Assembly (NCBI GenBank): GCA_051294905.1
Contig: CM119371.1
Coordinates: 7,874,001 to 7,938,000, forward strand
Length of the DNA stretch: 64,000 bases
Source: Botryllus schlosseri
Taxonomy: Eukaryota
Direction: 5' to 3'
This document shows, piece after piece, positions 6,951 through 23,836 of this stretch (positions are counted from its first letter, which is position 1; every line of letters starts with the position of its first letter). The notes under the pieces were generated by a model, which worked only from the letters and a program-made list of their open reading frames with translations, ran no database searches and was not told where the DNA came from. The position numbers and the translations under genes are program-made.

Positions 6951-8000
6951 ATGAGTAAAATGAAACGAGTGGAACTACTAGTATTATGGCTGGGCATGTG
7001 TTATGCTATTTATCCGGAAATAATAGAACAAAAGAAGTGTACCACCTATGAAAGACGAACAATATTATACCCGGAATGCATGCAAGGAAGTAATTTGGTA
7101 CTTTGGTGTGACCATTCGAGTTATACAAGAATTCCGGATCCTGATAAGATATACCTGGCAAAATCTTGTCGGAATACCGTAAAGATATTCATCAACGACA
7201 GCTGCCTACGGGAAATAACCAAAGAACAATTGGAAAAATATAAAGACTTAGAGGTGTTGCATTGTGGTTGGAATAAAATCCAAACAATACCAGGAGGTGT
7301 CTTCTGCAAAAATGAAAAGCTTAGGGAGATAAACTTGAAACGAAACTACATCACAAGAATACAAAATGAAAGCTTTTCAGGCCTACACCGACTGGAAGAA
7401 CTGTACATGAGTAGCAATTTGTTGGAAGAGATTGAAGGATCAACATTTGCAAGTCTGAGAAACTTACGAAGGTTATATTTGGATAACAATTTAATAAAGA
7501 GACTAAAGAACGGAACATTCATTCACTTGCATCGTTTAAGAATACTGGATTTATCAAGAAACGCAATAAACGTTATAGAAGAAGGGGCGTTCAAAGGACT
7601 GAGGAAACTGGAAACTTTACATTTGGATGAAAATAGACTGGTTGAATTTGATATGACAATACTTGAATCTTTATGTAATTTAGAGAGATTAACGTTGTAC
7701 TATAATAACTTGCAATATTTTTCTCTGTCCTCCAACATATCGTTCAAATATCTACATACTATTGATCTTAGTTATAATCATGTTCAATTTCTTAGTGATC
7801 TTATATTGAGAAAATTACCAGATTTGGAGGTTTTGAAATTAAATGGAAATAATAATGAAACGTCTACCAAAAGACCCTATGTCCGTAAACAATCAAGATT
7901 ATATTATGATGAAATGAAAAGTCTCTCTAATCATGTGACTATACATTCAAAATGGATATTTGCCATTATTGTTGGGTTAACCACTATGGAACTAATGTAA
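6951..8000 (+). CDS. Secreted or GPI-anchored leucine-rich-repeat protein (Toll/VLR-ectodomain-like)
   Basis: Signal peptide (MKRVELLVLWLGMCYA), Cys-containing LRRNT, nine 24-aa LxxLxLxxNxI repeats, no LRRCT or TIR, hydrophobic C-terminal tail (WIFAIIVGLTTMELM). Intronless. Confidence 0.9.
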   Translation: MSKMKRVELLVLWLGMCYAIYPEIIEQKKCTTYERRTILYPECMQGSNLVLWCDHSSYTRIPDPDKIYLAKSCRNTVKIFINDSCLREITKEQLEKYKDLEVLHCGWNKIQTIPGGVFCKNEKLREINLKRNYITRIQNESFSGLHRLEELYMSSNLLEEIEGSTFASLRNLRRLYLDNNLIKRLKNGTFIHLHRLRILDLSRNAINVIEEGAFKGLRKLETLHLDENRLVEFDMTILESLCNLERLTLYYNNLQYFSLSSNISFKYLHTIDLSYNHVQFLSDLILRKLPDLEVLKLNGNNNETSTKRPYVRKQSRLYYDEMKSLSNHVTIHSKWIFAIIVGLTTMELM

Positions 8001-8244
8001 AATTTTTATGATAAATTAAAATTCAGTGAGGAATTTTAATATGGAACTATGTAAATGGCCTTATATATTTTGTATAAAGGAATTACTAAAAAGTATCAAA
8101 ATGTGTTTGGGATTGCGTTGCGATGATCCGGAAATACAACATTCGACATGGATACCCAAAAAAGAAACACTAATAGATAAATGATTAAAGTCGCTGAAGT
8201 TTCTGTTGACAACATATACATTAACGGACCACTTATGCGATATA

Positions 8245-8607
8245 ATGTACGACGAATTAAATCCTCGCCTATTATATTGGAAACAAAAGTATGGTTTTAC
8301 TACGTGTAACAATCATTGGCCTGGGAAACATCTGGTTGAAGATGAGTGGGAAGAAACTTATACAGGAAGCATTTATCCTGAAAAACCTATACAAATGGCT
8401 TTTGCAGAAATCTGCATAAATTGGGTAACAATTTTGAAAAGAGTAAATCCTGAAATGAGGGAATTTCTAAAAAAAGGGGATTCTGAAAGAGATCTCATAA
8501 TGTGGATAATCTTTCCGGAAGTTCAGATTTACGCGTTGGCAAGGACGCAGGAAATATCATTAAAGGAAGCTGATTGCCGATTTATGACTTTGAAAGTGCC
8601 TGCATGA
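8245..8607 (+). CDS. Orphan cargo protein (120 aa), family A paralog
   Basis: First ATG at 8245 (ORF track starts at 8206). Motifs NPRLLYWKQ and ERDLIMWIIFPE are collinear with ORF 4020. Confidence 0.7.
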   Translation: MYDELNPRLLYWKQKYGFTTCNNHWPGKHLVEDEWEETYTGSIYPEKPIQMAFAEICINWVTILKRVNPEMREFLKKGDSERDLIMWIIFPEVQIYALARTQEISLKEADCRFMTLKVPA

Positions 8608-8676
8608 AACTTACCCTTCCAATGTTTATGTATGCAGAAACTACTTTTGAAAAAGACAATTAAGTTTTAAATAAAG

Positions 8677-9624
8677 ATGAAGATTAAAGAACCCAGAAAA
8701 AGAAGAAATTTGTTCAATCTTGCTCGATGTGGTATAATATCAAGTGACCGAAAATGTATAAAGTTTCTGCGATCACGGCAACTCCTTGTTCGAAAGGCAA
8801 CATGTTTTAAATGTGGACAACAAATGATTGAAGAAAAATGCAAAAGAACTATGGATGGATATAGATGGAGGTGTCCGATTTCAAAGTGTCGGACTACCAC
8901 GTCCATAAGGAAAAGATCGCTATTTGAAGGAAGCAAAATAAGACTCACTAAACTTGTAATGATGATTTATCTTTGGACCATTGATGTATCTCAACGACAA
9001 ATAGCTTTTGAAGCACACGTCAGCAAGAGAACAATGGTGAATTGGACCAAGAAACTTCGTAAGATATGCTCTGGTGAGATGGAAAGAAGAGGTACCATAA
9101 TAGGGGGAATATCACAAGGTAAATCACATGTAATTCAAATTGATGAAACGTTTGTGGCCAAAAGAAAATTTAATCGTGGAAGGATAATACGTCAACGCTG
9201 GGTTTTGGCTGGAATAGATATGGAAACGCGAGAAATGTTTGCAGAATTGGTACCTGAAGAAGGGCGAAAAACCTCGGTATTATCAGAAATAATTAGGAGA
9301 CACGTTAAAGAGGGATCTACTATATGGACTGATTCATTTGCCAGTTACCGCAAGTTGGAAAGTCTGGGGATGAATTATAAACATTCAATAGTTAATCATG
9401 ATCGCGAATTTGTTACTTCAGAAGGTATAAATACACAATTAATCGAGGTGTCTTGGAATTTTTTCAAAGCTGCTATTAGAAGACTGAATGGGGTATCAAG
9501 ACCACTGATTCCCCATTACTTACAGGAGTGGCTTTGGAAAAGAAGAGTGGCTTTGGAAGAAAGATTTCAGCGATTTCTGGAGATAATTGTCCTTGATCCC
9601 AATTTCCGGAGGTTGGAACATTAA
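8677..9624 (+). CDS. Merlin/ISXO2 (IS1595-like) DDE transposase, intact
   Basis: N-terminal CFKC...YRWRC...C zinc motif, SIR.GS.FE, catalytic QIDET, WTDS..SY..L, H..VNH, NTQ.IE.SW and HYLQEWLW. All match the Merlin pattern. Confidence 0.92.
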   Translation: MKIKEPRKRRNLFNLARCGIISSDRKCIKFLRSRQLLVRKATCFKCGQQMIEEKCKRTMDGYRWRCPISKCRTTTSIRKRSLFEGSKIRLTKLVMMIYLWTIDVSQRQIAFEAHVSKRTMVNWTKKLRKICSGEMERRGTIIGGISQGKSHVIQIDETFVAKRKFNRGRIIRQRWVLAGIDMETREMFAELVPEEGRKTSVLSEIIRRHVKEGSTIWTDSFASYRKLESLGMNYKHSIVNHDREFVTSEGINTQLIEVSWNFFKAAIRRLNGVSRPLIPHYLQEWLWKRRVALEERFQRFLEIIVLDPNFRRLEH

Positions 9625-9667
9625 AAACAACATTTGTCCTTATGAGTAATATCATCTGATATGAGTA

Positions 9668-10093
9668 ATGGGCTATACAAGGTTGTTGGTATGTGCAAAT
9701 AGTTTTGTTTATGTTAAGTTTAGACCGTGTCCATACCATACGATACCTGACAGCAGAGTTGCTTGGCTAAGGATGGTGATTGTACATGAACGAATAGAAG
9801 AAAAAATAGAAAACTTTCCAACTCTGACAGCCAATGACATGGAATACGTATTGAAGGATTTTCTTGTCTGGTTATACCGGGACCATGAGGTGGCGGAACA
9901 ATTGAAATGCGCTAAAAGAGTACTGGAGCAAATTGTGGAAGAAAACTTTGGAGAAAGCCCTGCATACTATTTGTATGTATTTCTACGATATGTGTTGGCC
10001 ATAGCTAATGTTGATGAACATTGGAACATTACTAGCAGAACTATTGCCGGTTTTTCACGGGCAATGTATACTATGGATAAACGACTGAATTAG
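9668..10093 (+). CDS. Orphan cargo protein (up to 141 aa)
   Basis: ATG-initiated intact ORF starting 43 nt after the transposase stop; predicted helical. Confidence 0.65.
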   Translation: MGYTRLLVCANSFVYVKFRPCPYHTIPDSRVAWLRMVIVHERIEEKIENFPTLTANDMEYVLKDFLVWLYRDHEVAEQLKCAKRVLEQIVEENFGESPAYYLYVFLRYVLAIANVDEHWNITSRTIAGFSRAMYTMDKRLN

Positions 10094-10154
10094 TAATGTT
10101 TTCTTTTCTTTTTATGTGTATCAAGTATTGTTGGATAATATTAATCTACACCGA

Positions 10155-10610
10155 ATGGCAAAACATAGATTACATTTTGAACGGCGAAAGATCGATCAAG
10201 AAATTCAAACAAACCCTGTAATTTTGAAAGCAGGGCCATTGGACGAGTTAGACATCTATGTTTGGCAAGCACTTTTGCGTGGACCCTCAAAAACACCATA
10301 TGAAAAAGGGACATTTCTCCTTAGAATTGAATTTCCAACGGAATATCCATTCAAGCCTCCAAAGATCAAATTTGAAACCAGAATTTTCCATCCGAATATA
10401 AGCCGTAAGGGTACCATATGTATTGACATTCTTGCAAATGAATGGTCACCTGCTTTAACGTTAGGAAAAGTATTGGTCTCGATTTCGTCATTATTGGCTT
10501 CTCCAAACCCAGAAGATCCAATGGATGTTGAAAGCGCCAGACTGTATCGGGATGACTATGATAGTTATCAGAAGACGGCACGAAAATGGACTGATATGTA
10601 CGCTAAGTAA
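10155..10610 (+). CDS. Ubiquitin-conjugating enzyme E2, Ubc4/UBE2D-like, intronless
   Basis: GP...TPYEKGTF...FP.EYPFKPPKIKF.TRIFHPNI...GTICIDIL..EWSPAL; catalytic Cys at 10419 and HPN motif intact; ATG at 10155. Confidence 0.95.
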   Translation: MAKHRLHFERRKIDQEIQTNPVILKAGPLDELDIYVWQALLRGPSKTPYEKGTFLLRIEFPTEYPFKPPKIKFETRIFHPNISRKGTICIDILANEWSPALTLGKVLVSISSLLASPNPEDPMDVESARLYRDDYDSYQKTARKWTDMYAK

Positions 10611-10748
10611 ATTGTCATGTATCCAGTATGCTTATCACAATTAATGAATATTCTAGAAGTGTTGTTATACTTATATGGGTGTCGAAAATGTTATTAAGGG
10701 AAATTTCCGGTCCAATAATCAATATAAAATTCTCTATGTTAAGAAAAT

Positions 10749-11207
10749 ATGGGGGATAAAATTGCTAGAGTAAAGCATGAACTTGACGTTTTCTTTGATT
10801 CCTTTGAAAAGAAATATGAACACAAAGACTTTGGCAAGTGGGCTGCAACAACCCGGGATGAACTGGAGACATTTATGACACCTTACTTGAGGATTTGCAA
10901 CCTGAGAGTATCCGATAAACTGTTTGATGCGCTATACAAAAAGCATTTAGCCATCTCCCGCATGATATTGTTTGAAAATTATGAACATGCTAAGTTTTGT
11001 TGGTTTGTCTTCTGTGTTGGATTACATCCTGCATCGGATGTCATACCTGAAGGCTGGGTGTTGGAAAGAATGCCTTGTTCTGACAGAACTGGATTTTGTA
11101 TTTATACCACGGATAAACTCTTTAATGATACTTTTCCCTCTGATGTGAGAGCTGCTATACTTATACATAAAATGAAATATAATGGCTGTGATAATTATGA
11201 ACAATGA
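10749..11207 (+). CDS. Orphan cargo protein (152 aa), family B
   Basis: Shares NYE.AK..WF.....HP....I...WV.E with ORF 11371. Confidence 0.75.
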   Translation: MGDKIARVKHELDVFFDSFEKKYEHKDFGKWAATTRDELETFMTPYLRICNLRVSDKLFDALYKKHLAISRMILFENYEHAKFCWFVFCVGLHPASDVIPEGWVLERMPCSDRTGFCIYTTDKLFNDTFPSDVRAAILIHKMKYNGCDNYEQ

Positions 11208-11370
11208 ATTCATGGATTGTATATTTCATTTTTTGCTAACTTAAATGTCTATTAATCATGTATGACGTGTATGCCAATTTAATTGAGTTTTACATTGAAT
11301 TATCTCGTTTCCGTCTGCATGACCAAATGGACCCTTACCTGGATGATTAATTTCTTTCAGAAAATTGAGT

Positions 11371-11820
11371 ATGAGTAACGTGGTGATAAATGATAATGGT
11401 GATGTTGATGTCACCAGAATAGTTGGATCTAATGTGGCGGAACAAGATTTGATCTTTTATTTTTGGTTATTCAAAGAACGATATGAAGCGAGAATACTTC
11501 CCTCTCATAGATGGTATGAGTGGTCAAAGACTCCACCCAAATATATTAAACTTGGATTGAAATGTTTTTGCAAACGAGTTAACGAAACCCTTTCCGATGA
11601 AAAGCCCTTTGTTATTGACTACCCAGGAATATTAGAAAACCACAAAATGATAAAAGACATGGCCTCTGGAAATTATGAAAGGGCTAAACTTTTGTGGTTC
11701 AACTATATGGCTCGAATGCATCCTATGGAAAATTTGATTACGGATGAATGGGTGAAGGAACAAGCCGAATCTACGGAACCCTTTTACCCTGAGGATACTG
11801 TAAATGTCCTACTTCTATGA
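11371..11820 (+). CDS. Orphan cargo protein (149 aa), family B paralog
   Basis: ATG at 11371, preceded by the acceptor-like tttctttcag; collinear with ORF 10749. Confidence 0.75.
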   Translation: MSNVVINDNGDVDVTRIVGSNVAEQDLIFYFWLFKERYEARILPSHRWYEWSKTPPKYIKLGLKCFCKRVNETLSDEKPFVIDYPGILENHKMIKDMASGNYERAKLLWFNYMARMHPMENLITDEWVKEQAESTEPFYPEDTVNVLLL

Positions 11821-11907
11821 GAATTATTAAGCCCATGAATGCTATTGTTTTCATGTACTTCTACTGTATGTATATAAGGCGTTATAGACTGCTACGCCCT
11901 ATATTTT

Positions 11908-12220
11908 AAGCAGGACCCTAGGGACTTAAAAATCCCTAGTTTTCAGGGAAACAAAATCCAGAATTTTACGGTGCGAACCCTTATTATAGGCTAAAAGAAA
12001 ACAAAAATCACGACTCCGTCACGTTCACGGTAATACGCAATGTCTCGAGTGACTTGGCTGCACACTATTTTAACGCTTGAACAAATTAAGTGACCGCTTG
12101 TTCTTGTGTGTATATAATGTGCTGTATATGGCTGCACTATAAGCCAGACCCTAGAGACCATCATCACCCTCTAGTTTAACCAAAACAAAATCCTAGATGC
12201 TTTAGGTGCGAATGGTTATT
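11908..12220 (+). ncRNA. Tandem pair of structured RNA motifs with compensatory base changes
   Basis: Copies at 11908-11985 and 12141-12220. Hairpin ctaggga/tccctag vs ctagag/ctctag; second stem aggg/ccct vs taacca/tggtta; invariant linkers aaacaaaat and ggtgcgaa. Confidence 0.5.
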
Positions 12221-12999
12221 GAGAAAAATAATGAAAAACAATATAAAACTTAATAAAATCTTGAACAACTATACCCATTAAGATTACGAAATAACAAACA
12301 CTAAAACATGTTTGAACAATCTACAATGCCTGTATTAAGTGGCATCTCAGTTAAGGGTAGTATCATGCGGTCCGATTAAGAGGATTATAGTGATTTTGAT
12401 TGCACTGAAGACATGACGTCCTTAATGTTGATATGTTACTTTGAAATGTTATGATCACAATAATATTGATGATTATGATGCTGAATGGAGTTACAAAGTA
12501 TTTGAAATGTAGTTGATATTTACGGCAGGACAGGCCGTCGCATGAATTATATGCGTAAACAAACCTTGGAGTATTGAAAATGTTTATTAATCATGTATGA
12601 TGATGTATAGGTTAAACCATGCCTTGTGTTATAATTGATGAATGATGTGTATGCCAATTTAACCAAGTTTTGCATAGAGTTACCTCATTTCCGTCTACGT
12701 GATTAATGATTGGAGTATTTGGTTGTATTAAGGTTTTAGATTACTTGTAAAAGGTTAGATTAGAGCTTTGGACCTAATGGTCATTGGCTGTTTGGAAACA
12801 AGACAATATTACAACTACGGAATACTTCAATCAACATTTACGACTTTGAAAAATCTCAAATCAACATCTACAGATCTACGAACGTCGTCAGTACTACACA
12901 AGAGAGCAAATAGTGTCAACTTTGTCCTACGAAGTATCCCGAACAAGTGTGGACTACTCGCATAACAATCGTTGTGGAGCTGCACTATAAAAACAAAAT

Positions 13000-13017
13000 T
13001 GGTGGCCAGTACGGGGA
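13000..13017 (+). promoter_or_regulatory. Primer-binding site complementary to the tRNA-Ile(AAU) 3' end
   Basis: TGGTGGCCAGTACGGGGA is the reverse complement of UCCCCGUACUGGCCACCA, the conserved metazoan tRNA-Ile(AAU) 3' end as recalled. A U5-like ...ACA ends at 12995, 4 nt upstream. Confidence 0.85.
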
Positions 13018-13048
13018 ATACTTCCGGTGCTCAGACATTGACCAATCG

Positions 13049-13318
13049 ATGCTTTCTAAGACGACTATCGTAAAACTTGTACTTGTCGTATCCTTGCTTT
13101 CATCATCCGTATCTCTCCTGATCATATTGTCAGCAATTTATCTGCACGTATCGCCTGGAGCGCTTTCTAATCTGTTGAACATAGTTTTGGGATCTAATAG
13201 CAGCGAATCTACTGCTTACGTTCAACCCACGAATACGCCGCAGGGATCTACAGTATATTTTAACTTGTCTTCACCTGATCTACTACCTTCGGTCAACAGT
13301 ACTTTCTCCGGTCGATAG
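13049..13318 (+). CDS. Small single-pass (type II-like) membrane glycoprotein, 89 aa
   Basis: ATG 32 nt after the PBS; hydrophobic IVKLVLVVSLLSSSVSLLIILSAIYL followed by three N-glycosylation sequons (NSS, NLS, NST). Confidence 0.65.
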   Translation: MLSKTTIVKLVLVVSLLSSSVSLLIILSAIYLHVSPGALSNLLNIVLGSNSSESTAYVQPTNTPQGSTVYFNLSSPDLLPSVNSTFSGR

Positions 13319-13324
13319 AAAGGA

Positions 13325-14376
13325 ATGCGAAGGATGTTGAAAGCATTTAAAAGGAAAAAGCCGTCAGAAGTGACGGATGAACTCAAGCAAGGTATTACTT
13401 TGCTTAAAGCAACACAAAAACGTCATGAAGATGTACGAAGACAAGAAAGACAACTTGCTAAGGATGTGGCCGAACAAACGGAATTACTAAAAGAGGTGAA
13501 AACAGCTCTGCCGGAAACTATGAAAGGTTTAGAGAAGGCAAAGAAAGAGGTTCGAAAAGCTCAAGCGGACCTCAAAGCTGTTTGTGATGCCACAACAAAA
13601 GTTAGCGGGAAGGTCTCCACCGACGTGCTGAATGACATTCTTACGTCAGAATTTGAGCTTGGAAAGTCGCATGCACAGGCTACGCGACATAGCATCCAAT
13701 CTCCCGTTTTGACAGTATCTCCAACTACACCAGAATATGATCCTCCGGCTTACGTTCCTCTCGATGAACAGCTGTCTGGTGATTTAAAACAAGGACCAAC
13801 GATGACGGTTCGCAAGGGTCTGGATTGTCACACTGTAACGGCAGTCTATCCTAAACTACCACGTTCTGACTCGACCACGTTTTCAGATTCCGGCAGGGGA
13901 ACTACACCATGCTTCCACGTGGGAAGTGGGGCACGCGCCAAACAGAATAAGCAAAAACCCGTAGAAATACCAAGCTTAATTGAACGTGGGGGGAGCGAGC
14001 TCCCCGTGGCATCAAAACCAAAGAAGAATCCCTTAGATAAGTATATGGGGTATCGAGGATGGCAGGAACGGCGCAACGAAGAGAAGGGTTCTCGAAGACG
14101 AGCGGGAAGTGCGGATGGCGCCTCCCAAAGGGTGACCTTTCATACTCCAGGCCAGGAACACTCGGATGCTGAAGATTCTGAAATCGACTTCCAGGCCAGA
14201 CTGAAACAGATTTCCAAAGGTATACAAGATAACATCAGGTCCCTACAGGGCAATGCATATTCTCGGAACGCCGCGGAAGAATCTCTTGAGGAGGAACTTT
14301 CCGACAACTCTAACTCTCCGGATATACCTCGCGCTACCTCCACTCCAAAAGAGTATGGGGGGAGGGTTAGGCGGCG

Positions 14377-14407
<31 letters not shown>

Positions 14408-14497
14408 CGACAACCGCAACCGCACCAATATCCTGGTGTTTCGGCCCCAGTGCTCAACGTGTCTACTAAAATGCAATCAGAAAAAGAAATGCTCTAG
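13325..14497 (+). CDS. gag: Gag N-terminal protein (matrix-like coiled coil, late domains, polyQ)
   Basis: Basic N-terminus, heptad coiled coil, PPAY (13742-13753), YPKL (13847-13858), Q10 (14378-14407). Ends in a TAG in frame with the next ORF. Confidence 0.7.
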
Positions 14498-14500
14498 CTT

Positions 14501-16213
14501 ATGATGGACCCTGGAGACATGCCACTGCTAAAATGGATGGAAAATTCAATGCGACGAATACGCCATGGTACTGGAAATACGGATGTGGATGTTATTTTGG
14601 CTAATGCGCTGCAGAAGAAATTGAGGGCTGCTGGCCGACACAAGCAGGCTACCCAACTGGGAAATTTTTTTAATACCAATTCGGGGGAAGCAGAGTGGGA
14701 ATCGGTTATGCGATCTCTTTCATTATCTAATCCCCAGGGTTTAGTAAATGATGAAAAGATCATTGGGGATTTCCGCAGAAATTATCGGTGGGAGGATGAG
14801 CCCCTACCTCTGCTTAATAGCGCTTTGAAGCAACTGGAAATAGACATGGATAGTTTTATTGAAGATAATCCGGATGGATTGCGTCTTTTCCGAAATCTAA
14901 GACAACGACTTCCCGAAGCGCTCAGATTGATGTTACGAGGCTGGGAGGAAGAGAAAAGATGGCGGGATGTTGCGGAGGAACTACAACTTGTTTGGAACTC
15001 CGAGTTTCTGGACGAACAAGAGACGCGCCCCAGGTATCAGGAAAAAAAGGAAGTACGTGATACAAAACCGTCCTTGCCGCCGGTACACATTTATAATGTT
15101 CAACCTGCAGGGCAAATAATGCAGAGTTATCCCACCTATGGTAACGATGACAGTCAGCTCAATACTCCTCCTCCACCCGGTGAAACCCCACCGCCGGTGG
15201 TACAATCACCTTCGCCCCTGCAACCACTGAATAACTTTGGGGGGGCAACACCTCCTGGATCACCTAGGGGGATCTCACCACGTCAGCTTACCAATGCAGG
15301 CCAGGAACCGATACCACGTCGGAATCCTCAACGTGCAGCGCGCGACAATCGTTTCCCTACCCGCATCATGAATGGTAATGGATTTGGTAGGCGAGGACGA
15401 GGCTCGAGGGCCAGGCCCGTACAACAACAGAATGGGCGCACTGCATCATCGAGACCTAACGGACAGACAACGAGAATAACAAGGTCTTCACGTGCTAATC
15501 CAGGACCGGGAATCTCGAACCGAAGTCCACGAATGGCGAATACACAAGACTCCGGGATGGGTGCAGACAGCTCACAGATTACGCCTTCCAGCAGCCAGGA
15601 AGCCCGCAACATTGCGGATAGTCAAGGTGAGCGATACAATTTTCTTGGAAATCCGAATATTTTTGCCCCTCTAGGCTTGTATCTAAATCCCACCCAGGGA
15701 CAATCCCTGTCCGTCTGTTACTACTGTAAGGCACCGGGACATCAATCCCGAAATTGCGTGGCTAAATTCATACTGTGGCTAAACGATAAGGTTCTTGCCA
15801 GAGATGAGGAATTAGGATGGATAATTCGTGGGCGAGCACGACCTGTACCCCCTCATGTTAAAGAGTCTGCTGAACGAAACTGGAAACCGTTTCTGGAAAG
15901 AAATAACATACTTACAATTGAGGGTCTTGATCGATATCTTGCTGCTCAAGGTTCACCATCATTTACACAAAGAACCGCTCTGTGCGAAGCCTATTATGAT
16001 ATCAGGCCAAAAAATCGTGATAGAACCCACTGGCATGATAGGGATCAATGGGGTCCTCATGGACCACCTACACGTCCATCTGGGGGAAATACCCACGTGG
16101 CCTGGGCGAAACCTCAATATCATGAGCGCCCGCGTCGATATGATGCTTCATATTGGACGGACGAGGAGCTAAATCAAGGTGTACGACTTTCAAAAAACGC
16201 CATGGGGTGCTGA
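14501..16213 (+). CDS. gag: Gag capsid/nucleocapsid protein with CCHC zinc knuckle
   Basis: Helical capsid-like N-terminal ~200 aa, Pro/Arg-rich linker, CYYCKAPGHQSRNC (CX2CX4HX4C); overlaps pol in the -1 frame. Confidence 0.88.
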   Translation: MMDPGDMPLLKWMENSMRRIRHGTGNTDVDVILANALQKKLRAAGRHKQATQLGNFFNTNSGEAEWESVMRSLSLSNPQGLVNDEKIIGDFRRNYRWEDEPLPLLNSALKQLEIDMDSFIEDNPDGLRLFRNLRQRLPEALRLMLRGWEEEKRWRDVAEELQLVWNSEFLDEQETRPRYQEKKEVRDTKPSLPPVHIYNVQPAGQIMQSYPTYGNDDSQLNTPPPPGETPPPVVQSPSPLQPLNNFGGATPPGSPRGISPRQLTNAGQEPIPRRNPQRAARDNRFPTRIMNGNGFGRRGRGSRARPVQQQNGRTASSRPNGQTTRITRSSRANPGPGISNRSPRMANTQDSGMGADSSQITPSSSQEARNIADSQGERYNFLGNPNIFAPLGLYLNPTQGQSLSVCYYCKAPGHQSRNCVAKFILWLNDKVLARDEELGWIIRGRARPVPPHVKESAERNWKPFLERNNILTIEGLDRYLAAQGSPSFTQRTALCEAYYDIRPKNRDRTHWHDRDQWGPHGPPTRPSGGNTHVAWAKPQYHERPRRYDASYWTDEELNQGVRLSKNAMGC

Positions 16214-19200
16214 TTGATCCGGTGAATCAGCTCCCAGATAAATTGATATTTCAACACATAAAAACTGTACATAACTCTTCTTTACCATTGTTTACATTTC
16301 TCGATATGCCGGATGACCCCCTACAGCCCGATTTTACGGAATTGTTTGGCAGCCAACTGTTGTATTTGGTTGATACAGCAACTGGTACGAAATTCCTAGC
16401 TGACACGGGGAGCATCCCCAATTTAATAATGAAAAAGGTCGTTATAACTAAATACCCACAAAGCTGGGAAGAACGTCAACCAATAGACATGGAATTGACT
16501 GGAATAGGTGGCTCTTCCCAAGTGGATTCCTTTGTAGTGATTGATTTTGATGGACTGTCCGTTCCATTTGTGACCGGATCAGGAGTCCCACTTAATATCA
16601 TAGGGCTGAAATGGATTGAGGAAATTCAACAATTACCAAGCATAACTACGGAATTTAAAACCCCGTCTAACGCAAATGATGAGTTGTCTTTAGCGTCACT
16701 ACTTGAAGAGAATCATTGTGATCAAGGTAACGGAACCAAAGTTGGAAGCAGTATTAGCTACCCTGTAACCAACGATGGGTTGATGGATGCTGCAAACCAA
16801 TTTAGCGTGGAGCGGAAAATGGCCGCTGGCGCGAGTACCGAGATGGAAGTAACCACTGGTGCGATCGACGAGTTGAAAATAGCAACTAATGTCATACCTA
16901 ACCCATGGGAAACTGGTGGTGTTGAGACAGGAATGCCTCTCTACACCATTAATAAAAACGTCGAGCGTGGAATCCCCGCTGGCGTAAAAATGGAACTGCA
17001 CGAGAAAACTGATCCTGAAAACTTTCGTGGATGCACTTGTCCGAATGGCCTTGAGGATTCGGCCCATAGTTGCATGACGACAGTCACAGTAATAAGTACT
17101 TTCCCAAACGGTTCAAATGAAGCAGCAATTGCCGGTCAACCGGATACACGTCCGGACATGTCCGACAAGGAGTCTGGGGATTTTAGGATGCACGTCTCCC
17201 CAGAAAAAGGGTCCCCGGCGGAAAAGGAGTCCGTCGGCGTGGCGATAGGTGCGGGCACGCGCCTAGATCAGAGGCCTACATCGAAGGACCTCGCCCTCTC
17301 TCCACCAACACCCACAACTCGGTCATCACGAATCTCAAATCAACCTAGGGCTGGGCCAATTACTACGTATGCTTTACAGAAGGACACTCACCCACGCGTC
17401 AAGACGGAGCTAGAAAATCTCTGCGCACAATCAGTAGCGCTGGCCAAACTCCCATACAAACCTCCTGATCTAACTACTCCAGAAAATACCATCATCTCTG
17501 ATGATGTCTGGAAAGCAATTTACGAACCGTTCGCGTCCGAACTCGAGGACCTGCGAGGCCATCTTGGCGGCCCGCAAACCATGAAATACAAATGTGACAT
17601 AGAACTTAAAGATCCCTCGACGAAACCATTTGTGTCTGGGCCTTATAATCTGAAGGGGGAGGGCCAGGCAAAGGCATTGAAAGAAGCGGTAGATAACTTT
17701 CTGGACTTAGGCGTCATTGAACGAGGTTTTGCTGAATGGAAGTTGGCTATCTTTGTGGTCCCTCAGAAAATGAATGAAAGACAAAAACAAGAGGACGGAT
17801 GGAAGCAAGCCTGGAGAGTAGTACAGAATCTCCAACCCCTTAATGCGGCCATAAAATCAATAGAAGTACCTCCACCTCTTGTACCAGATGTAAAGCAGCT
17901 CGCCCAAGGCAGGGAAGTGCTTTCTCTCCTTGATTTGAAGAAGGCCTATTTCCACATGGATGTAACGGAAAGATCTAAACAATATGTGGGTATAGCCATC
18001 AAAGGGATGCATGTAAGATGGCGTAAAATGCCGATGGGGCTTAAAACTGCGGTGGCTCTTTGGAGCGCGAATATGCAGGAATGCGTGGTGAAACCAATTA
18101 CGGAAAATTATCGTAAATACATGAAGCAAAATGGTCGGTCGGATGAGGAGAATGCGACGCCTATGGAGGCCTACATAGACGATATTTTCCTTAGCACAAA
18201 AACGGTAGAAGATCATCTAATACTACTACGCATGGTATTTGAACAGCTCGCCAAGATGAAACTGACTGTCAGCATCAATAAGTGTTTCATTGGAAAGCGA
18301 AGGGTGAACCTTTTGGGGGCAACTTTGACGGGGAAAGAAATTGAGGTTCAGCCTGAAAGAATAAGGGCTTTACGCGAACTCTCACCACCCCACAATGTAT
18401 ACGAGTTAAGGGGGTGGATTGGCGCACTTCGCTATATCTCGGAGCATATACCTGAGTTAAGTTTGAAGCTGGCCAAATTCGATGCGCTAACAGGCAAGGT
18501 CCCTGCGACACAAGGACGAGTGACTCCTGTGCTATGGACCAATGAATTACTGCAGGACTTCAAAACGGCACAAGCAGCCCTTGATGACGCTAAGGTCTTG
18601 TACCACGTAGATCCAAATCTTCCTATTTTTGTGGAAACAGACGCTTCAGATATTGGGTTTGGATCAATCATTTTTCAGACAGAAAAGGGGTGTAAGCCAC
18701 CTTTCGAAGAGGTTTACCCAATTGCTTACTACAGTCAAAAGTGGGCGACTCCAACGGCAAAAGCTTATGATCCCTGTACAAAGGAATTGAAAGCCTTAAA
18801 GGATTCGGTGGAAAAATGGCAATCAATGTTGAGAGCCTTACCCTTTACAATAATCACTGATAACACTGGGGTATTTGGGCTCCTCAAAAGAATGACGGAT
18901 AAAGCAAAAAATCCAAGCCCAAAACCCCTGATTCAGAGGTGGCTCAATCATCTCGCAGGATTCCAAATAAAAGAGGTAATTCATTTAAGCACGATGCAAG
19001 TATTTACGTCAGATGGATTGTCTCGATCTTATTGGATGGAAATGGCTGCGGGAGAGGATGATCCACATGTTTGGGCAACAATTCCTAAGAAAAAGAGTAG
19101 TTCGTACCTACAGAAAAGACCCCGACCGGAAAAAATACAGCAGATGCTGATGTATCATTGCCGCCATGAGCTTTGTGACAACTCGGTGGACGGGTTCCAT

Positions 19201-19626
19201 CCCTGGGATGATATTTGTGGCGTCCTCCAGAAGAAAACTGGGGACCAAATGGAAATGGATGAAATACGAAGCGTCATGCAAAGGTGCGACAGAGCAATAA
19301 CCTCGGAATATGGTCTGGCGGCCGCCCATGGGCATACAAAAGGGACGCCCCCTCCGTACTGTAAATATGGAGGTAACGAGGTATTGTACCACATGACGAC
19401 CGAAAACAATGCAAGACGGATAATGTCCGCGGGCATTGAACGGATGAACAGGAGATTCATTCATTTGAGCAAAACTCTAACGAAAAAAAGCAAAAGACGT
19501 AATGTAGTAATTTGCATGAAAACAGCAGATCTAAGGAATGAGGGACTCGTACTGCTGCAATCAGACGTACAAGAAGTGGTGTTGTGCGAAGGCCCTATAC
19601 CACCCACAGTCATACAAAAGATGTAA
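16153..19626 (+). CDS. pol: Pol polyprotein: aspartic protease - long spacer - RT - RNase H - Tpt1/KptA; no integrase
   Basis: FLADTGS (D at 16402), LDLKKAYF, MPMGLKTA, YIDD (18172-18183), VETDASD...KELKA...TDN...SDGLSR, then a Tpt1-like domain up to the stop codon. Confidence 0.95.
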   Translation: MDGRGAKSRCTTFKKRHGVLIDPVNQLPDKLIFQHIKTVHNSSLPLFTFLDMPDDPLQPDFTELFGSQLLYLVDTATGTKFLADTGSIPNLIMKKVVITKYPQSWEERQPIDMELTGIGGSSQVDSFVVIDFDGLSVPFVTGSGVPLNIIGLKWIEEIQQLPSITTEFKTPSNANDELSLASLLEENHCDQGNGTKVGSSISYPVTNDGLMDAANQFSVERKMAAGASTEMEVTTGAIDELKIATNVIPNPWETGGVETGMPLYTINKNVERGIPAGVKMELHEKTDPENFRGCTCPNGLEDSAHSCMTTVTVISTFPNGSNEAAIAGQPDTRPDMSDKESGDFRMHVSPEKGSPAEKESVGVAIGAGTRLDQRPTSKDLALSPPTPTTRSSRISNQPRAGPITTYALQKDTHPRVKTELENLCAQSVALAKLPYKPPDLTTPENTIISDDVWKAIYEPFASELEDLRGHLGGPQTMKYKCDIELKDPSTKPFVSGPYNLKGEGQAKALKEAVDNFLDLGVIERGFAEWKLAIFVVPQKMNERQKQEDGWKQAWRVVQNLQPLNAAIKSIEVPPPLVPDVKQLAQGREVLSLLDLKKAYFHMDVTERSKQYVGIAIKGMHVRWRKMPMGLKTAVALWSANMQECVVKPITENYRKYMKQNGRSDEENATPMEAYIDDIFLSTKTVEDHLILLRMVFEQLAKMKLTVSINKCFIGKRRVNLLGATLTGKEIEVQPERIRALRELSPPHNVYELRGWIGALRYISEHIPELSLKLAKFDALTGKVPATQGRVTPVLWTNELLQDFKTAQAALDDAKVLYHVDPNLPIFVETDASDIGFGSIIFQTEKGCKPPFEEVYPIAYYSQKWATPTAKAYDPCTKELKALKDSVEKWQSMLRALPFTIITDNTGVFGLLKRMTDKAKNPSPKPLIQRWLNHLAGFQIKEVIHLSTMQVFTSDGLSRSYWMEMAAGEDDPHVWATIPKKKSSSYLQKRPRPEKIQQMLMYHCRHELCDNSVDGFHPWDDICGVLQKKTGDQMEMDEIRSVMQRCDRAITSEYGLAAAHGHTKGTPPPYCKYGGNEVLYHMTTENNARRIMSAGIERMNRRFIHLSKTLTKKSKRRNVVICMKTADLRNEGLVLLQSDVQEVVLCEGPIPPTVIQKM
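16192..16235 (+). promoter_or_regulatory. -1 programmed ribosomal frameshift signal (gag-pol)
   Basis: A AAA AAC at 16192-16198 in the gag frame, 5-nt spacer, then hairpin GGGG(U)GCUGAUU-loop-AAUCAGCUCCC (16204-16235). A -1 shift enters the pol frame. Confidence 0.85.
19120..19623 (+). other. RNA 2'-phosphotransferase (Tpt1/KptA) domain at the Pol C-terminus
   Basis: MLMYHCRH (cf. LSYxLRH), DGFHPWDDI (cf. DGWVxxDEL), DRAI (cf. KxRF), AAHGHT (cf. RAxQGHS), LYHMT (cf. LYHGT), GIERMNRRFIHLS (cf. GLxxMxRxxVHLS), VVLCEGPIPP (cf. VxLxxxVPP). Confidence 0.85.
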
Positions 19627-19726
19627 AGCTGTTTTTGGCAGAGTGTAAATATGTGATATAATAGGGGTGAACGGCCGAAACTCTTATAATGGGTGTAAAC
19701 GGGAAAAACTGAAACCTCGTAACTAG

Positions 19727-19751
19727 AAAAAATGCTGAGTCAGCATTTTTT
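19727..19751. repeat. 25-bp palindrome with a central AP-1-like TGAGTCA
   Basis: AAAAAATGCTGA-G-TCAGCATTTTTT, flanked by direct ACCTCGT repeats (19714-19720 and 19752-19758). Confidence 0.8.
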
Positions 19752-22700
19752 ACCTCGTGTGGAAAAACGAGAGAATAAGAAGAAAGAAAGGTTTAAGTGA
19801 TGTAAGAAGTCAATTGAATTTAATGATCATGGGGAATCATGATGAATAACGTCAAGTAGACACACGAGTAAAGCGGGCATATACTGCACTAGTTCCCAAG
19901 TTGTTTGTAATATTACTCCTGTGATATTTGTGACATTGAAAATGAAGCTGCTGGAGATCATGAACTAGTGATTACAGTGGATCACAGATCTGAGATAGCT
20001 GAAACTGTGAGAACTGTAGGCCTATTTCGGAGTAATATCGGGGACAGTATATTCAACTTCTATATTGAGGCGTTTGCCTCGTATGATCTCTCGGCAATTC
20101 AAGATAAAGGAGTAATATGACTAATCTTGACAGACGATGAAAGTAAGTAATTATTACCACAAATAAATTGGTAGGCTACTAGACTAGGATTACACTCTTA
20201 ACGCATATTGGAAGAGTTGTTTCGGGGTTCCGAACGACACTGATGCCAAATATGACCTTGGTTTTTTCGAATTGTCTCTGGTTTTGGTGATATCCCATGG
20301 GGTTATTTTGACCAAAGTCACATTTTCACTGTATGGTCCAGATAAAAAAACGGCTAAGACATTAAATCTACTTGTTATACTAAACACTGTATTAAATCAA
20401 AATGCAGTAAAATAATTATATTTGGGGTAATTGGATTTATCATAATTGGAGTTTTTTATTGAATATTTCTTGAGAGACCACGTCATATTTAGAGTGGTGC
20501 CCCTTTAATTTCAACCTTGCAATCAATTTCTTACAACCACGTTGCTATTTTTGCGCTGAAGAGATATTTCCATGGCTAAGCCAAATCGTGACTCTTCTAT
20601 ACCTGTGCAGAGAAAGCTGTTTGCAAAGTCAACACATCTACCCTCCCGAACTTAGCGTCGACGAGCATCAAAAGGAAATAAGTCAGAGTGGAAATAGAGG
20701 GTGCCAGATGAAGAGATGCTGCAAGATAGAATGAGAAGAACTTTTAAATCAGGCCGCGACAGTATGTCGTAAATGGAAATATCAGCAAGAATACTGATGG
20801 AGAATGAAGATATACCCAGTTTTGACCCATGCTCCCTTGGTAGGTACAGCCTAACGCAGTGGTTTCAAACACAACATTGCCATTATCGAGTCAACCTGCG
20901 ACTTTGCAACAAACCCACAAAGAGTTCGTTTTTCAGAATGCTATGATAGTACAAAACAAACTACATATATATATTGCTGAAATAATTTACGATAGCTGTG
21001 ACATATCCTCGAGAACAAGCCCGACTTGTGCTTAAATTGAGACTACTGATAGTACTGAAGGCTCCTGCAGATTAACTTAATTAATTAGCTATGATGTAAA
21101 TCTGTCACAATGTTCAGATTTTGGAAGAAGTGAAAATATGTTGCCTGAATCAAGCCTGTTTGGATGTTGACTTGACCTCGAAGATTTTGGAAATAACTTG
21201 GAGCTCTGCACTCAGTCTCCTGCAACCGCAAGAAATTCCGATAGAAATTCAAAAAGTTATGGGTAAGTAAGAGACTTTCGCAAATTTAGTTAGTTGGCGG
21301 TCAATATCTGTCGAGTAGTTCTAGTCGCGGATTGGGAAAAATGATTAGTTCAAATTTTAGTCGCGGGTTTCGGGAAGTGAGTAATTCTTGTTCCAGCTTC
21401 GCAGTTGTGTAGGTGCCCAATAACTGAAAAACACATGTCATCGCGAGGGTGGGTTGAAATGGAATAGCCTACCTGAGTGATTCCACAGATCTAGTTAGTT
21501 TAGGGGCGGGGCAATTATTGTTCTCTGCAGGCCACTTCAGTAATAGAAAGTAAGTTGGCGTGCCGAGCCGAGCCAACATGTTCAGCTATATTCTCCAGTG
21601 TATTGATTTTATTTTAATGGAAAGCAGTGAATTACAATTTTAATAAATACGTCTCCGTGGATGTGTTGATATTAGATATAGCCTAATGAGAAAAGTACGG
21701 TTAATTAACGAAATGAAGATTTATATTTATTTTCCCTCCTAATTCAAGATAATGTTGAACATGATACATTTTGAATTCTCTGTAATCCAGGTTTTTATAT
21801 CAATACATTAAACGGTAGGCTATATCCTAACAGTTGCGACTTGATGAAATTGACATATATATATCGGTTTCGGTCGACATGTGGCGGTACTTTTGGTGAA
21901 GGTTTCCTCGCCGTTAAGCTTTTTTGCAGCACACTTCGCACAGTCAATTGTTAGCCGAAACGTCATTGTCAACGTCTTGGTGTGTCCTGACGCGCTAACA
22001 GCCGACGCCGAAATGCTGATCTCTATAAATGAGCTGTTTTTGCGGGTAGAGTGGTACCCATATTATTATCAAAACATCTAGTCACTATATATCGCGCGAA
22101 GAAAATTTGAATGAAGTTTCATAAATTATAGGATTTATGTCCATTTACGAAGTATTTTTTGGTGCTTCGAGGTCGGCCCTCTCCATTTGAGGGGTCTGGG
22201 ATGCGGCAGTTGCAGCCCTCCGTTTAGTGCTCCATACCTTCTTTGCATTTCAGCTTTCGACATTCTTTGGCCATTCACCCTTTATGTATGATGAGGTCTC
22301 AGTCAAAACGCGCACTGATAATGGCAACAAAGAAGGTTTGAACCCAACCATATGGAGGGAGTAACTTATTGTGACTAATTGTTACAACTTTGCTACATTG
22401 ACTTGATTTTAAATCTGGATTACGCATACAAGCTTGGGAGGGACGTAGGCTATGTAATCGCGATATATTATTGAGCAGGTTTCAAAGTAAATCAATTTCC
22501 GTTCCAGCTCAATTTATCCAGCTTATGGTTTTATTCCACGCAGCAATATTCAAAAGTAGGTTTTATGTCTTTAATTCCAAAAAATAGCCACGCGTGCTTC
22601 TCAAAATAGCGGGGCTCACTTTGCCCATGACTGAGTTCGATGTATTATAGTTCGTTAGATGCGGATTTATAAAGGTCATAACTTGGTAGGATATTATAGA

Positions 22701-23836
22701 AATAGGGTATTTCAAGTTGCCGATTTTAAAAACTGTCTGGTTCCTAAGGCAATGTTAAAATTTGCATATTTTTGCCACGCCCATATTTGCAGTTCACACT
22801 ACACAGACAGTAACTGCATTCATTTAATTTTTGTAACTGCATTTATTTAATTTTTAAAAGGTTTTTTTTTCTCGAGTGTTTCACTTGAGCTGATCTCTCA
22901 CTTCTCATTCAGGTAATCAGAAATTGGACTGGGTGGTCGGCATCCCCACCATTTTCAATGAACGCTTCGACAGCTTCCTGATTGTGGATAAGGTGAGTTG
23001 CTGATAATGGCCAAAACTGGTTTGCTCAATAATACTACAAGACAATACTACAATACTGATAATAATACTCAATTCAGATTCAAGTGCTCGAATCATTATG
23101 CCCAGCCCTACAAACAATGTGAGTTTAGTGTGCGCCATTGCCTCGCGGGAAAACCAGTCAAAAACCACTGATATTGTTAGTTGTGATTTAGTTCGTAAGC
23201 TCCTAATTTTAAAAGGTTGCTAGTACTAGTTCTAGTATCGAATTTTAAAAAGTTCTAGGTATAGTTGTAAGTTATAGTTATATTTGTGGATTTTGATAAT
23301 TGAGTAATTTTAGTTACAATTCTAGTTTTGAATTTTATATTGTGATTGATTAGTCCTAGTTTTAGTTTTACTTGCGGATTTGAAAAAGTGAGTAGTTCTG
23401 TTTTCGGAATTCCCAGAAAAGACACAAACAACCTTTGGCCGGGTCACAATCACCAAAGTTGAACTCCGTCACCAAAATACAAGTTTTCAAATCCTGGATT
23501 CACCGCCCATCCGTGCATTAATCCATCCATTTATTAATAATTGGATAATCGTAGGTCGTAGCATCAAATAGTATAGTGGTGCAGAGGTAAAGGAATGGAA
23601 GACTGTGCAATGTGCATGTGTGCATACTTGATATTGTCAAGTAAAAAGTAGATTTTGTACATACCGAGACAATTCATAGACAAGGTCAATGTAATGAGGT
23701 GCTAATAGATTTTGTCATCTTAACTGGCTGTGATTGATACAACTTTAAACCACCTTGGAAACTATTCATCTGTATTCTATCAACCTGTGTGCCTTGAATA
23801 GTGCATGGATGGTAATGACATTTATATTCATTATAG

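Follow-up and report, generated by a model that had tools for sequence, protein, structure and literature searches.

The window analysed here is a stretch of 64,000 nucleotides of Botryllus schlosseri DNA (GenBank assembly GCA_051294905.1, contig CM119371.1, positions 7,874,001 to 7,938,000 of the forward strand), and all coordinates are positions within it. It contains a retrovirus-like element with an uninterrupted polymerase (Pol) that lacks an integrase and ends in a domain related to the NAD+-dependent RNA 2'-phosphotransferases (Tpt1/KptA). The features of the element are as follows.

13000-19880, plus strand: minimum extent of the element copy, from the primer-binding-site-like sequence to the 3' end of homology; the true 5' end is not defined.
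13000-13017, plus strand: putative tRNA primer-binding site, starting with TGG.
13325-16213, plus strand: gag region, reading as two same-frame ORFs separated by one in-frame stop (1 stop, 0 frameshifts), with a CCHC zinc knuckle in the C-terminal part.
16153-16213, plus strand: gag/pol overlap, with pol in the -1 frame and an A_AAA_AAC-type slippery heptamer in the gag frame.
16153-19626, plus strand: pol ORF of 1157 codons (0 stops, 0 frameshifts), in the order protease, reverse transcriptase (RT), RNase H, Tpt1, without integrase.
16330-16632, plus strand: retropepsin-like protease region (D84-T85-G86 motif).
17803-18327, plus strand: RT (RVT_1, residues 551-725; Y674-I-D676-D677, the YIDD motif).
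18535-19026, plus strand: connection and RNase H (residues 795-958).
19114-19623, plus strand: Tpt1/KptA domain (residues 988-1157; Pfam core 19135-19593), with tetrad codons at 19162-19167, 19291-19293 and 19450-19452 and the HxT motif at 19390-19398.
19627-19880, plus strand: 3' untranslated region with a putative polypurine tract (about 19769-19791).

The 3' boundary was set by comparison with L013, the locus of a relative, which is 85% identical in nucleotides over 19141-19879 and then continues into unrelated sequence; the purine tract is conserved in L013. The 5' side was set by the primer-binding-site-like 18-mer. GC content rises from 35% to 45-50% at about 13000 and falls again after 20000. 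Searches around the window copy for LTRs, terminal inverted repeats and short terminal repeats found none. A co-oriented array of ORFs upstream of the element (3390-13318) shows no similarity to any ORF in the relatives' loci.

The gag C-terminal part carries a zf-CCHC match (E 2.9e-4) and matches gag of 7 relatives' loci. Given that another relative's locus, L004, has the same layout of two same-frame gag ORFs split by one stop, the in-frame stop may be programmed rather than a sign of decay. In three relatives a U_UUA_AAC heptamer lies in the same position as the slippery heptamer of the window copy, whereas a downstream hairpin of -18 kcal/mol is not significant on its own (z -1.46). In Pol, G86 of the protease motif is invariant and D84 and T85 are nearly invariant in the family alignment, and one relative's protein (P0003) has a weak RVP hit. 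The RT was identified by RVT_1 (E 1.4e-17), with Y674, D676 and D677 invariant, and the RNase H by RT_RNaseH_2 (residues 795-900, E 2.2e-19) and RT_RNaseH (E 1.6e-16), with D830 invariant and E878, D903 and D954 nearly invariant. The RNase H ends in SDGLSR at residues 953-958 and is followed by about 170 aa.

The original prediction, made from the sequence alone, was that Pol ends in a Tpt1/KptA domain where integrase should be, with its catalytic tetrad and NAD+-binding motif retained, and this observation is confirmed. In the whole Pol, Pfam places PTS_2-RNA (PF01885) at residues 995-1147, covering profile positions 6-177 of 177; the isolated piece scores E 3.7e-11 and 43.8 bits (profile positions 5-177) against a gathering cut-off of 26. 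A single-sequence search of PDB returned Tpt1 as the top ten hits, and NCBIfam and PHROGs returned only RNA 2'-phosphotransferase models, although the score lies far below the NCBIfam equivalog cut-offs (50 bits against 231). A profile built from the family gave 13 hits in PDB, all of them Tpt1 (E 4.5e-18), and 8 of 8 family domains hit PF01885. The fold is known only from prediction: an AlphaFold2 model (pLDDT 87.2) shows the winged-helix RNA lobe and the ADP-ribosyltransferase-type NAD+ lobe of these enzymes, and its top 22 Foldseek hits in PDB are all Tpt1, with TM 0.73-0.81 to ligand-bound forms.

The residues named in the original prediction are exactly placed, with R1004 at 19162, H1005 at 19165, R1047 at 19291, R1100 at 19450 and the Y-H-x-T motif at 19387-19398, in which H1080 and T1082 form the HxT motif that binds the NAD+ ribose. 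We considered an alternative reading in which the third tetrad arginine is the one just before the GHS motif and has been replaced by Ala. This was rejected because the tetrad of the Clostridium thermocellum enzyme is defined as R18, H19, R68 and R121, with K66 two residues before R68 (PMC6333775; see also PMC12678800), and the profile alignments show that the invariant R1047 is the R68 equivalent. The tetrad is kept in 9/9 (R1004), 9/9 (H1005), 9/9 (R1047) and 8/9 (R1100) of the aligned sequences, H1080 and T1082 are each kept in 9/9, and the same residues occur in a further relative, L009. By contrast, the highly conserved Lys two residues before the third tetrad Arg (Cth K66, Tko K63) is present in 0 of 9 members, where the column holds C, S or E and never K or R, and is G in L009. 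The domain has also gained a family-specific His/Cys set in the RNA lobe (H1002, C1008, H1016, C1021/1022) that may bind zinc.

The fusion is not unique to this copy. Every relative whose Pol C-terminus is available (10 besides the window, from 6 independent public datasets) carries the domain, so the two conditions set beforehand as refuting the prediction, a fusion confined to one decayed copy and an unconserved tetrad, clearly do not hold. An artefact, whether a chance similarity, an assembly chimera or the pol frame running into a host TRPT1 exon, is refuted by the uninterrupted ORF, the independent occurrences, the profile and fold matches, and the fact that the domain matches archaeal and bacterial enzymes far better than mouse or human TRPT1 (E 1e-18 against 1.9e-5 and 2.8e-3); nothing was found in favour of it. 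Within the Tpt1 domain pN is 0.25-0.33 against pS of 0.73-0.86; only pN and pS are given, because saturation of synonymous sites prevented a proper estimate of dN/dS.

The first homologue search, restricted to the Tpt1 region, found nothing, the domain alignment was too variable for scanning loci, and a scan of IMG/VR found no relative. Long proteins (1500-4400 aa) that ranked high in a search of representative sequences resembled close relatives, but they are gene models that string together several ordinary Ty3/gypsy copies, integrase included. Short Tpt1-only proteins (P0229, P0231 and P0233) looked like possible stand-alone or domesticated genes, but they are fragments of decayed Pol copies that begin in the RNase H end.

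No integrase domain was found in this Pol, in the rest of the element, or in any of the relatives' Pols or neighbouring ORFs. In one lineage (L003) a complete AP-endonuclease domain follows Tpt1 (E 1.9e-18). This differs from APE-type non-LTR retrotransposons, in which the AP-endonuclease is N-terminal to a LINE-type RT and there is no protease; in L003 it is C-terminal to a Ty3/caulimovirus-type RT-RNase H-Tpt1, and the window Pol has no endonuclease. A well-sampled subfamily has no LTRs, and the solitary copy in locus L011 has only a 25-nt terminal direct repeat; copies of relatives also occur in tandem, inverted or rearranged arrays, which are not seen in the window. In L011, L002 and L012 a TGG-initiated 18-mer sits 22 nt after the terminal repeat, and it is also kept in the diverged L006, so that it is conserved in two diverged subfamilies. 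The putative primer-binding site of the window matches it at 14 of 18 positions, and purine tracts lie near the 3' ends, but no cognate tRNA was identified and no host tRNA gene was at hand to confirm the site. Self-cleaving ribozymes or tRNA-like signals might have explained a need for 2'-phosphate removal, but an Rfam search of the window and 7 loci gave no match, and no tRNA genes or tRNA-like processing signals were found. We found no RNA ligase, 2H, macro or Nudix partner in the window or the relatives and no kinase or cyclic phosphodiesterase in the element or its relatives, and the relatives' accessory ORFs held no RNA-repair partner domains.

The analysis itself establishes that the last 170 residues of Pol are a complete Tpt1/KptA domain, two-lobed in the predicted structure, with its phosphate-binding Arg-His-Arg-Arg tetrad and NAD+-binding motif. 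It also establishes that this domain is a fixed part of Pol under purifying selection in a small family of elements with gag (CCHC), protease, RT and RNase H but no integrase, and that Pol sits in the -1 frame behind a slippery heptamer. Catalysis, packaging and the substrate are inferred. We are highly confident that this is an active Tpt1-type enzyme built into Pol, although this is inferred from sequence and predicted structure alone. The interpretation in the original prediction is partly supported: the identity of the domain, its retained residues, its position at the C-terminal place that integrase holds in related Pols, and its probable delivery into particles are supported, whereas the functional proposals, that it heals RNA or primer-tRNA lesions or caps cDNA ends, are not supported by any data here and remain inference.

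Because Pol lies in the -1 frame behind the slippery heptamer, Tpt1 is probably made as Gag-Pol and enclosed in the particle with RT, the template RNA and the primer tRNA. We suspect that there it uses NAD+ to attack a phosphate monoester on the element's own replication intermediates. In this scenario, the most likely target would be a terminal phosphate, either the 5'-phosphates that RNase H leaves on both cDNA strands when it removes the tRNA and polypurine primers, or a 5'-phosphate RNA end. The end would be given an ADP-ribose cap or dephosphorylated, and this would control what happens to a linear cDNA that has no integrase, through protection from exonucleases and sensors and control of when host ligation can circularise or insert it. 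The best-matching solved relative, the KptA of Thermococcus kodakarensis (TkoKptA), transfers 5'-phosphate from DNA to NAD+ using the same tetrad, and its K63A change, at the position of the Lys missing here, stops the reaction at the ADP-ribosylated intermediate (PMC12678800). The AP-endonuclease in one lineage likewise indicates that the C-terminal end of Pol in this family holds DNA-end enzymes. This mechanism is nevertheless tentative and rests on no substrate evidence of any kind. The tetrad is used identically for 2'-phosphate and 5'-phosphate substrates (PMC12678800), so its conservation does not discriminate between them, and the missing Lys is dispensable in the Runella, yeast, human and mouse enzymes, so its loss may mean little. 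Blocking 5'-phosphates would also block the ligation that an integrase-less cDNA presumably needs, so that a removal step by host hydrolases has to be assumed, and the argument from position in Pol is weak, because dUTPase, Nudix and other accessory domains also sit in Pols of related elements.

Classical Tpt1 chemistry, the first of the functions originally proposed, is possible but in our view less likely. The domain would remove internal (or 3'-terminal) 2'-phosphates, left by host RNA cleavage and yeast-type religation, from the packaged template RNA or primer tRNA, where they would stall RT or block priming. This is the defining activity of the family and the whole tetrad and HxT motif are intact (PMC6333775), Tpt1 domains embedded in RNA-virus polyproteins have been read as RNA-repair modules (PMC9503650), some Tpt1 enzymes also remove terminal 2' or 3' phosphates (PMC6573784), and the element may be tRNA-primed. 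However, the absence of RNA-repair partners, ribozymes and tRNA-like signals from the sequences examined does not point to an RNA-repair pathway, and the primer-binding-site-like sequence would pair with an intact CCA end rather than a cleaved tRNA. Internal 2'-phosphates are expected to be rare in animal cells, where the main tRNA ligase pathway (RtcB) is not known to leave them, and the host's own TRPT1 would be redundant unless the reaction must happen inside the capsid.

It is unlikely that the domain acts instead on host molecules, ADP-ribosylating or dephosphorylating host RNAs or DNA ends, or consuming NAD+ or NAD+-derived signals, to blunt an antiviral response. NAD+/ADP-ribose enzymes are common weapons in virus-host conflicts (PMC9503650), and the Tpt1 domain evolves faster than RT and RNase H (25-35% against 40-55% identity, and 55% against 84-87% in the closest informative pair), as conflict proteins often do. 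Yet the domain is covalently part of Gag-Pol and would be present at low copy and confined to the particle, its catalytic and substrate-phosphate residues are those of nucleic-acid Tpt1 enzymes, and we identified no known animal defence that Tpt1 would reverse. A non-catalytic role, as a nucleic-acid-binding or NAD+-sensing module or a structural C-terminal domain filling the architectural place of integrase in particle assembly, is very unlikely. The N-lobe is a winged-helix RNA-binding fold (PMC6333775) with the added His/Cys set, and integrase has structural roles in retroviral particles, but invariance of exactly the tetrad and HxT motif in sequences only 25-35% identical overall is what catalysis predicts and not what binding alone predicts.

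A more far-reaching possibility, unlikely on present evidence although not excluded, is that the family is a new lineage of animal reverse-transcribing elements, partly enveloped, that has dispensed with integrase and LTRs altogether. Tpt1 chemistry (ADP-ribose capping, 5'-dephosphorylation, or ADP-ribose-mediated joining of nucleic-acid ends) would then decide whether the cDNA persists as an episome or enters the genome through host repair, and the family would be an animal counterpart of plant pararetroviruses with a new enzymatic solution at the DNA-end step.

Pols of reverse-transcribing elements are built from a short list of domains (protease, RT, RNase H, integrase or another endonuclease or recombinase, and sometimes dUTPase), and an NAD+-dependent nucleic-acid phosphotransferase/ADP-ribosyltransferase is not on that list. 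Here such a domain appears as a conserved, selected part of Pol in a family that has lost integrase and, where the ends can be seen, LTRs. This gives a natural system bearing on what Tpt1-family enzymes do in organisms that do not need them for tRNA splicing and on how integrase-less retroelements handle their cDNA ends, and it widens the known diversity of retrovirus-like elements in marine animals.

Stand-alone Tpt1/KptA/TRPT1 enzymes, for example those of T. kodakarensis (9LD4/9LD6), Pyrococcus horikoshii (8TFI) and C. thermocellum (6E3A), share the predicted two-lobe fold, the tetrad, the GH[ST] motif, the HxT motif and full-length coverage of the Pfam model. The domain described here differs in being fused to the C-terminus of an RT/RNase H, in being only 17-22% identical to the solved enzymes, and in the missing Lys and the extra His/Cys set. 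Tpt1 folds are also carried by other eukaryotic viruses, in RNA-virus polyproteins (Botrylloides leachii nidovirus, Melipona quadrifasciata virus 1a), in some cases embedded in a replicase, and as stand-alone genes of giant viruses and a sawfly baculovirus (PMC9503650). None of these is a reverse-transcribing element, none of the matches in the viral structure library is fused to an RT, and no paper describing an RT-Tpt1 fusion was found in the literature we could search.

With Ty3/gypsy-type LTR retrotransposons (Metaviridae) the element shares gag with a CCHC knuckle, an inferred -1 frameshift, the protease-RT-RNase H order and the RT_RNaseH_2 connection domain. Outside the family these are the nearest proteins in the large database searched (21-29% identity), and the family profile hits Ty3 RT at E 1e-37, but no member has an integrase and LTRs were not found, the ends in the well-sampled subfamily being a 25-nt direct repeat only. 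With Caulimoviridae (plant pararetroviruses) it shares a protease-RT-RNase H Pol without integrase and a CCHC capsid protein, and integrated copies of the relatives occur as tandem and rearranged arrays. The best solved-structure match for the RT-RNase H part is 8R0S, 'Enzymatic polyprotein' (E 3.4e-44), which we take from its name to be a caulimovirus Pol. Here, however, the host is an animal, there is no movement protein, some relatives carry class II fusion-type envelope genes and CUB-domain ORFs, a badnavirus Pol is a much weaker hit in the large database than Ty3/gypsy Pols, and no episomal form has been shown, the data being assembled contigs only. Finally, the capture of a small nucleic-acid or nucleotide-metabolism enzyme into Pol has parallels in the accessory domains of other retroelements (dUTPase, Nudix, AP-endonuclease), and several of the Ty3/gypsy-type hits carry PF00692 (dUTPase), PF00293 (Nudix) or PF03372. 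Those Pols keep their integrase, whereas in this family the accessory domain is present and the integrase is absent throughout.

A compact retrovirus-like element lies on the + strand between about 13000 and 19880, and its GC content (45-50%) stands out from that of its surroundings (33-40%). The element has the following organization.

13000-13017 (+), an 18-mer that begins with TGG and resembles, at 14 of 18 positions, the putative tRNA primer-binding site of relatives
13325-16213 (+), a gag region that reads as two ORFs in the same frame separated by a single stop, the second of which carries a CCHC zinc knuckle
16153-19626 (+), an uninterrupted pol ORF of 1157 codons
Pol residues 84-86, a retropepsin motif (D84-T-G)
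Pol residues 551-725, the reverse transcriptase (RVT_1, with YIDD)
Pol residues 795-958, the Ty3-type connection and RNase H, ending in SDGLSR
Pol residues 995-1147, a domain that Pfam calls PTS_2-RNA
19156-19218 (Pol residues 1002-1022), a family-specific His/Cys set within the Tpt1 RNA lobe
about 19880, the 3' end of the element, 253 nt after the pol stop and downstream of a conserved polypurine tract

The pol ORF overlaps gag by 70 nt in the -1 frame, and the overlap holds an A_AAA_AAC-type slippery heptamer in the gag frame. No integrase was found in Pol, and there is no further long ORF downstream. The 3' end was placed by comparison with L013, a 788-bp contig from another dataset that is 85% identical in DNA and 90% identical in protein. 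Searches for LTRs, inverted repeats and short terminal repeats around this copy returned none, and its 5' end is therefore undefined. Pol contains no breaks, whereas the gag region has one in-frame stop and no frameshift. Given that the related locus L004 has the same layout, the stop may be a programmed feature. Among other relatives, the pol of L009 (a marine contig) is split by one frameshift, the protease region of the related locus L001 lies in a different frame from RT, and the second pol copy in the related locus L003 is cut short by an inserted DNA transposon.

Directly upstream of the retroelement (3390-13318, +) is a roughly 10-kb array of co-oriented, intronless ORFs. The array includes an LRR membrane protein (6951-8000), an IS1595/ISXO2-like transposase (8677-9624), an E2 ubiquitin-conjugating enzyme (10116-10610), two weak PWP3A-B_C-like paralogues (4020-4880 and 8206-8607), paralogous small ORFs (10749-11207 and 11365-11820) and repeated intergenic modules with TATA-like boxes (11250-11322 and 12630-12702; about 11868-11990 and 12108-12225). 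This is unusual for an animal genome whose remaining 44 kb has no long ORFs, and the array could be a large-DNA-virus-like insert or the cargo of a larger mobile element. None of its ORFs matches the relatives' loci. Elsewhere in the window, direct repeats of about 1.1 kb (47027-48108 and 55722-56809) are 88-94% identical and 8.7 kb apart, and look like the LTR pair of an old, decayed LTR retrotransposon with no long ORF between them. A near-perfect palindrome at 53351-53936 has two 289-nt arms that are 94% complementary and separated by 8 nt. Inverted repeats of 318 nt (92%) at 57474-62008 enclose a THAP-like ORF (57784-58215, +) and a Penelope-type GIY-YIG-like ORF (58536-59093, -), which are probably transposon remnants. 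These remnants are the basis in the sequence for judging the host to be an animal.

The original prediction that Pol ends in a Tpt1/KptA domain holds. The isolated C-terminal piece scores 43.8 bits (E 3.7e-11) on PF01885 against a cut-off of 26 and covers the whole model. Its top ten hits in PDB are RNA 2'-phosphotransferases, and in NCBIfam and PHROGs it hits only models of this kind. A profile of eight family domains hits 13 solved structures, all of them Tpt1/KptA/TRPT1, with a best E of 4.5e-18. An AlphaFold2 model built on the family alignment has a mean pLDDT of 87.2, and the first 22 Foldseek matches of this predicted structure in PDB are all Tpt1. The TM-scores are 0.73-0.81 to ligand-bound forms and lower to open apo forms, as expected for a two-lobe enzyme. 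We exclude the possibility that the match is an artefact.

The catalytic tetrad is defined in the literature as R18, H19, R68 and R121 in the Clostridium thermocellum enzyme and as R17, H18, R65 and R118 in the Thermococcus enzyme, together with an HxT motif for NAD+. In the window these residues are R1004, H1005, R1047 and R1100, and H1080/T1082, at the codons where the original prediction had placed them. We initially suspected that the third arginine had been lost, but this reading was ruled out by the published assignments.

The fusion is a trait of a family rather than of this copy alone. A search of 5.8 billion proteins found nine relatives at 37-46% identity over RT-RNase H-Tpt1, and the next-best hits are ordinary Ty3/gypsy Pols with integrase at 21-29%. 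A metagenome scan added two marine contigs (L008 and L009), and a profile search added L013. Several relatives come from marine metagenomes. Every member whose Pol C-terminus is available has the domain, namely the window, the related Pol proteins P0001-P0008, L009 and L013, the relatives coming from six public datasets (ERZ781364, ERZ22157276, ERZ25067590, ERZ21736675, ERZ650156 and OFEW01). L008, from a seventh dataset (OUOG01), ends at its contig edge before that point. Within what public assemblies contain, the family is rare, as a library of 1.84 billion cluster representatives gives three full-length representatives and about twenty fragments. Within one assembly, however, one subfamily is multicopy, with 215 members at 90% identity or more on many large contigs.

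In the nine aligned sequences, R1004, H1005 and R1047 are each conserved in 9/9, R1100 in 8/9, G1060-H1061 in 9/9, and H1080 and T1082 in 9/9 each. The domain as a whole evolves faster than RT and RNase H (25-35% against 40-55% identity). In the two pairs close enough to compare, non-synonymous differences in Tpt1 (pN 0.25-0.33) are far below synonymous ones (pS 0.73-0.86), although the latter are saturated.

The domain departs from canonical Tpt1 in two respects. First, the conserved lysine two residues before the third arginine (K66 in the Clostridium thermocellum enzyme and K63 in the Thermococcus enzyme) is never present, and is replaced by C, S or E, or by G in L009. In the Thermococcus enzyme, K63A halts the reaction at the ADP-ribosylated nucleic-acid intermediate, whereas the equivalent change is tolerated in the Runella, yeast, human and mouse enzymes. 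Second, the RNA lobe has a set of residues that could bind a metal, H1002 (9/9), C1008 (9/9), H1016 (8/9) and C1021/1022 (8/9). This set is absent from the solved Tpt1 sequences aligned here and, judged from sequence alone, may be a zinc site.

Among solved structures, the RT-RNase H part of the family is nearest to 8R0S, 'Enzymatic polyprotein' (E 3.4e-44), which we take from its name to be a caulimovirus Pol, followed by Ty3 (1e-37), foamy viruses and gammaretroviruses. The family therefore sits in the Ty3/gypsy-Caulimoviridae neighbourhood. No integrase or recognisable recombinase was found in any relative. In one lineage (L003, 721-6727), Pol continues after Tpt1 into a complete AP-endonuclease domain (Exo_endo_phos, E 1.9e-18) and is followed by an 895-aa ORF with an alphavirus-E1-type (class II fusion) domain (E 5e-19), making it an envelope-bearing, endonuclease-bearing cousin of the window element. 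Five other relatives (L002, L005, L006, L007 and L011) have a CUB-domain ORF, one or two large ORFs and several small ORFs after pol. In L011 the CUB domain is fused to the large downstream ORF (1333 aa), which suggests a CUB-bearing surface glycoprotein, while the other accessory ORFs have no recognisable domains. The window copy, L001 and L009 appear to be gag-pol only.

The ends can be read in the multicopy subfamily (loci L011, L002 and L012), which has no LTRs. A solitary 13.8-kb copy (L011 7563-21387) is bounded by a 25-nt direct repeat and nothing more, and tandem arrays share one copy of this repeat at each junction. The flanks differ between insertions, so the repeat belongs to the element. 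A TGG-initiated 18-mer follows 22 nt after the repeat, and is conserved in a subfamily whose Pol is only about 70% identical. Arrays also contain inverted segments. In L012, the 3' half of one unit is inverted, with one breakpoint at the unit junction. The element in L004 is flanked by inverted repeats of at least 1.4 kb at 99% identity (5993-7391 and 21338-22736), for which we have no explanation, and which may be longer because the right arm runs to the end of the sequence examined. The integrated form thus looks like a copy of a terminally redundant RNA (R ... R) and not like a provirus with LTRs, and arrays of this kind recall endogenous pararetroviruses.

The analysis establishes that the domain has everything known to be needed for Tpt1 chemistry, that it has been kept under selection as part of Pol, and that Pol is in the -1 frame behind a slippery site in the window and in three relatives. 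What we infer beyond this is catalysis itself, and that the domain is made as Gag-Pol and enclosed with RT, template and primer, so that its substrate is most likely one of the element's own replication intermediates. The interpretation offered with the original prediction is only partly supported, and its functional ideas remain inference.

[quoted passage not shown] We tentatively favour the second. The element and its relatives carry no recognisable partner for an RNA-repair pathway and no ribozyme, the putative primer site pairs with an intact CCA end, and internal 2'-phosphates should be scarce in animal cells. In addition, the domain sits where DNA-end enzymes sit (integrase in relatives outside the family, and an AP-endonuclease right after it in L003), and the universally missing lysine is the residue whose loss traps the capped intermediate in the closest solved homologue. 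RNase H removal of the tRNA and polypurine primers leaves 5'-phosphates on both cDNA strands, and these would be the obvious candidate substrates. Classical 2'-phosphate removal seems to us the less likely of the two but remains fully possible, because conservation of the tetrad does not discriminate between them. A host-directed role is unlikely, and a non-catalytic role more unlikely still.

Tpt1 domains are known as cellular enzymes and in some phages, giant viruses and a sawfly baculovirus, and a few are embedded in RNA-virus polyproteins. We found no report of one in a reverse transcriptase-bearing element in the literature that could be searched, and none in the viral structure library. 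By its domain, the finding belongs to the Tpt1/KptA family, as each defining feature that could be examined in sequence and predicted structure is present except the ancillary lysine. By its element, it is not a regular Ty3/gypsy member, because integrase and LTRs were looked for and not found, and it is not a caulimovirid either. We consider it a retrovirus-like element that differs from those already known in its new Pol domain and in its integrase-less, LTR-less organization.
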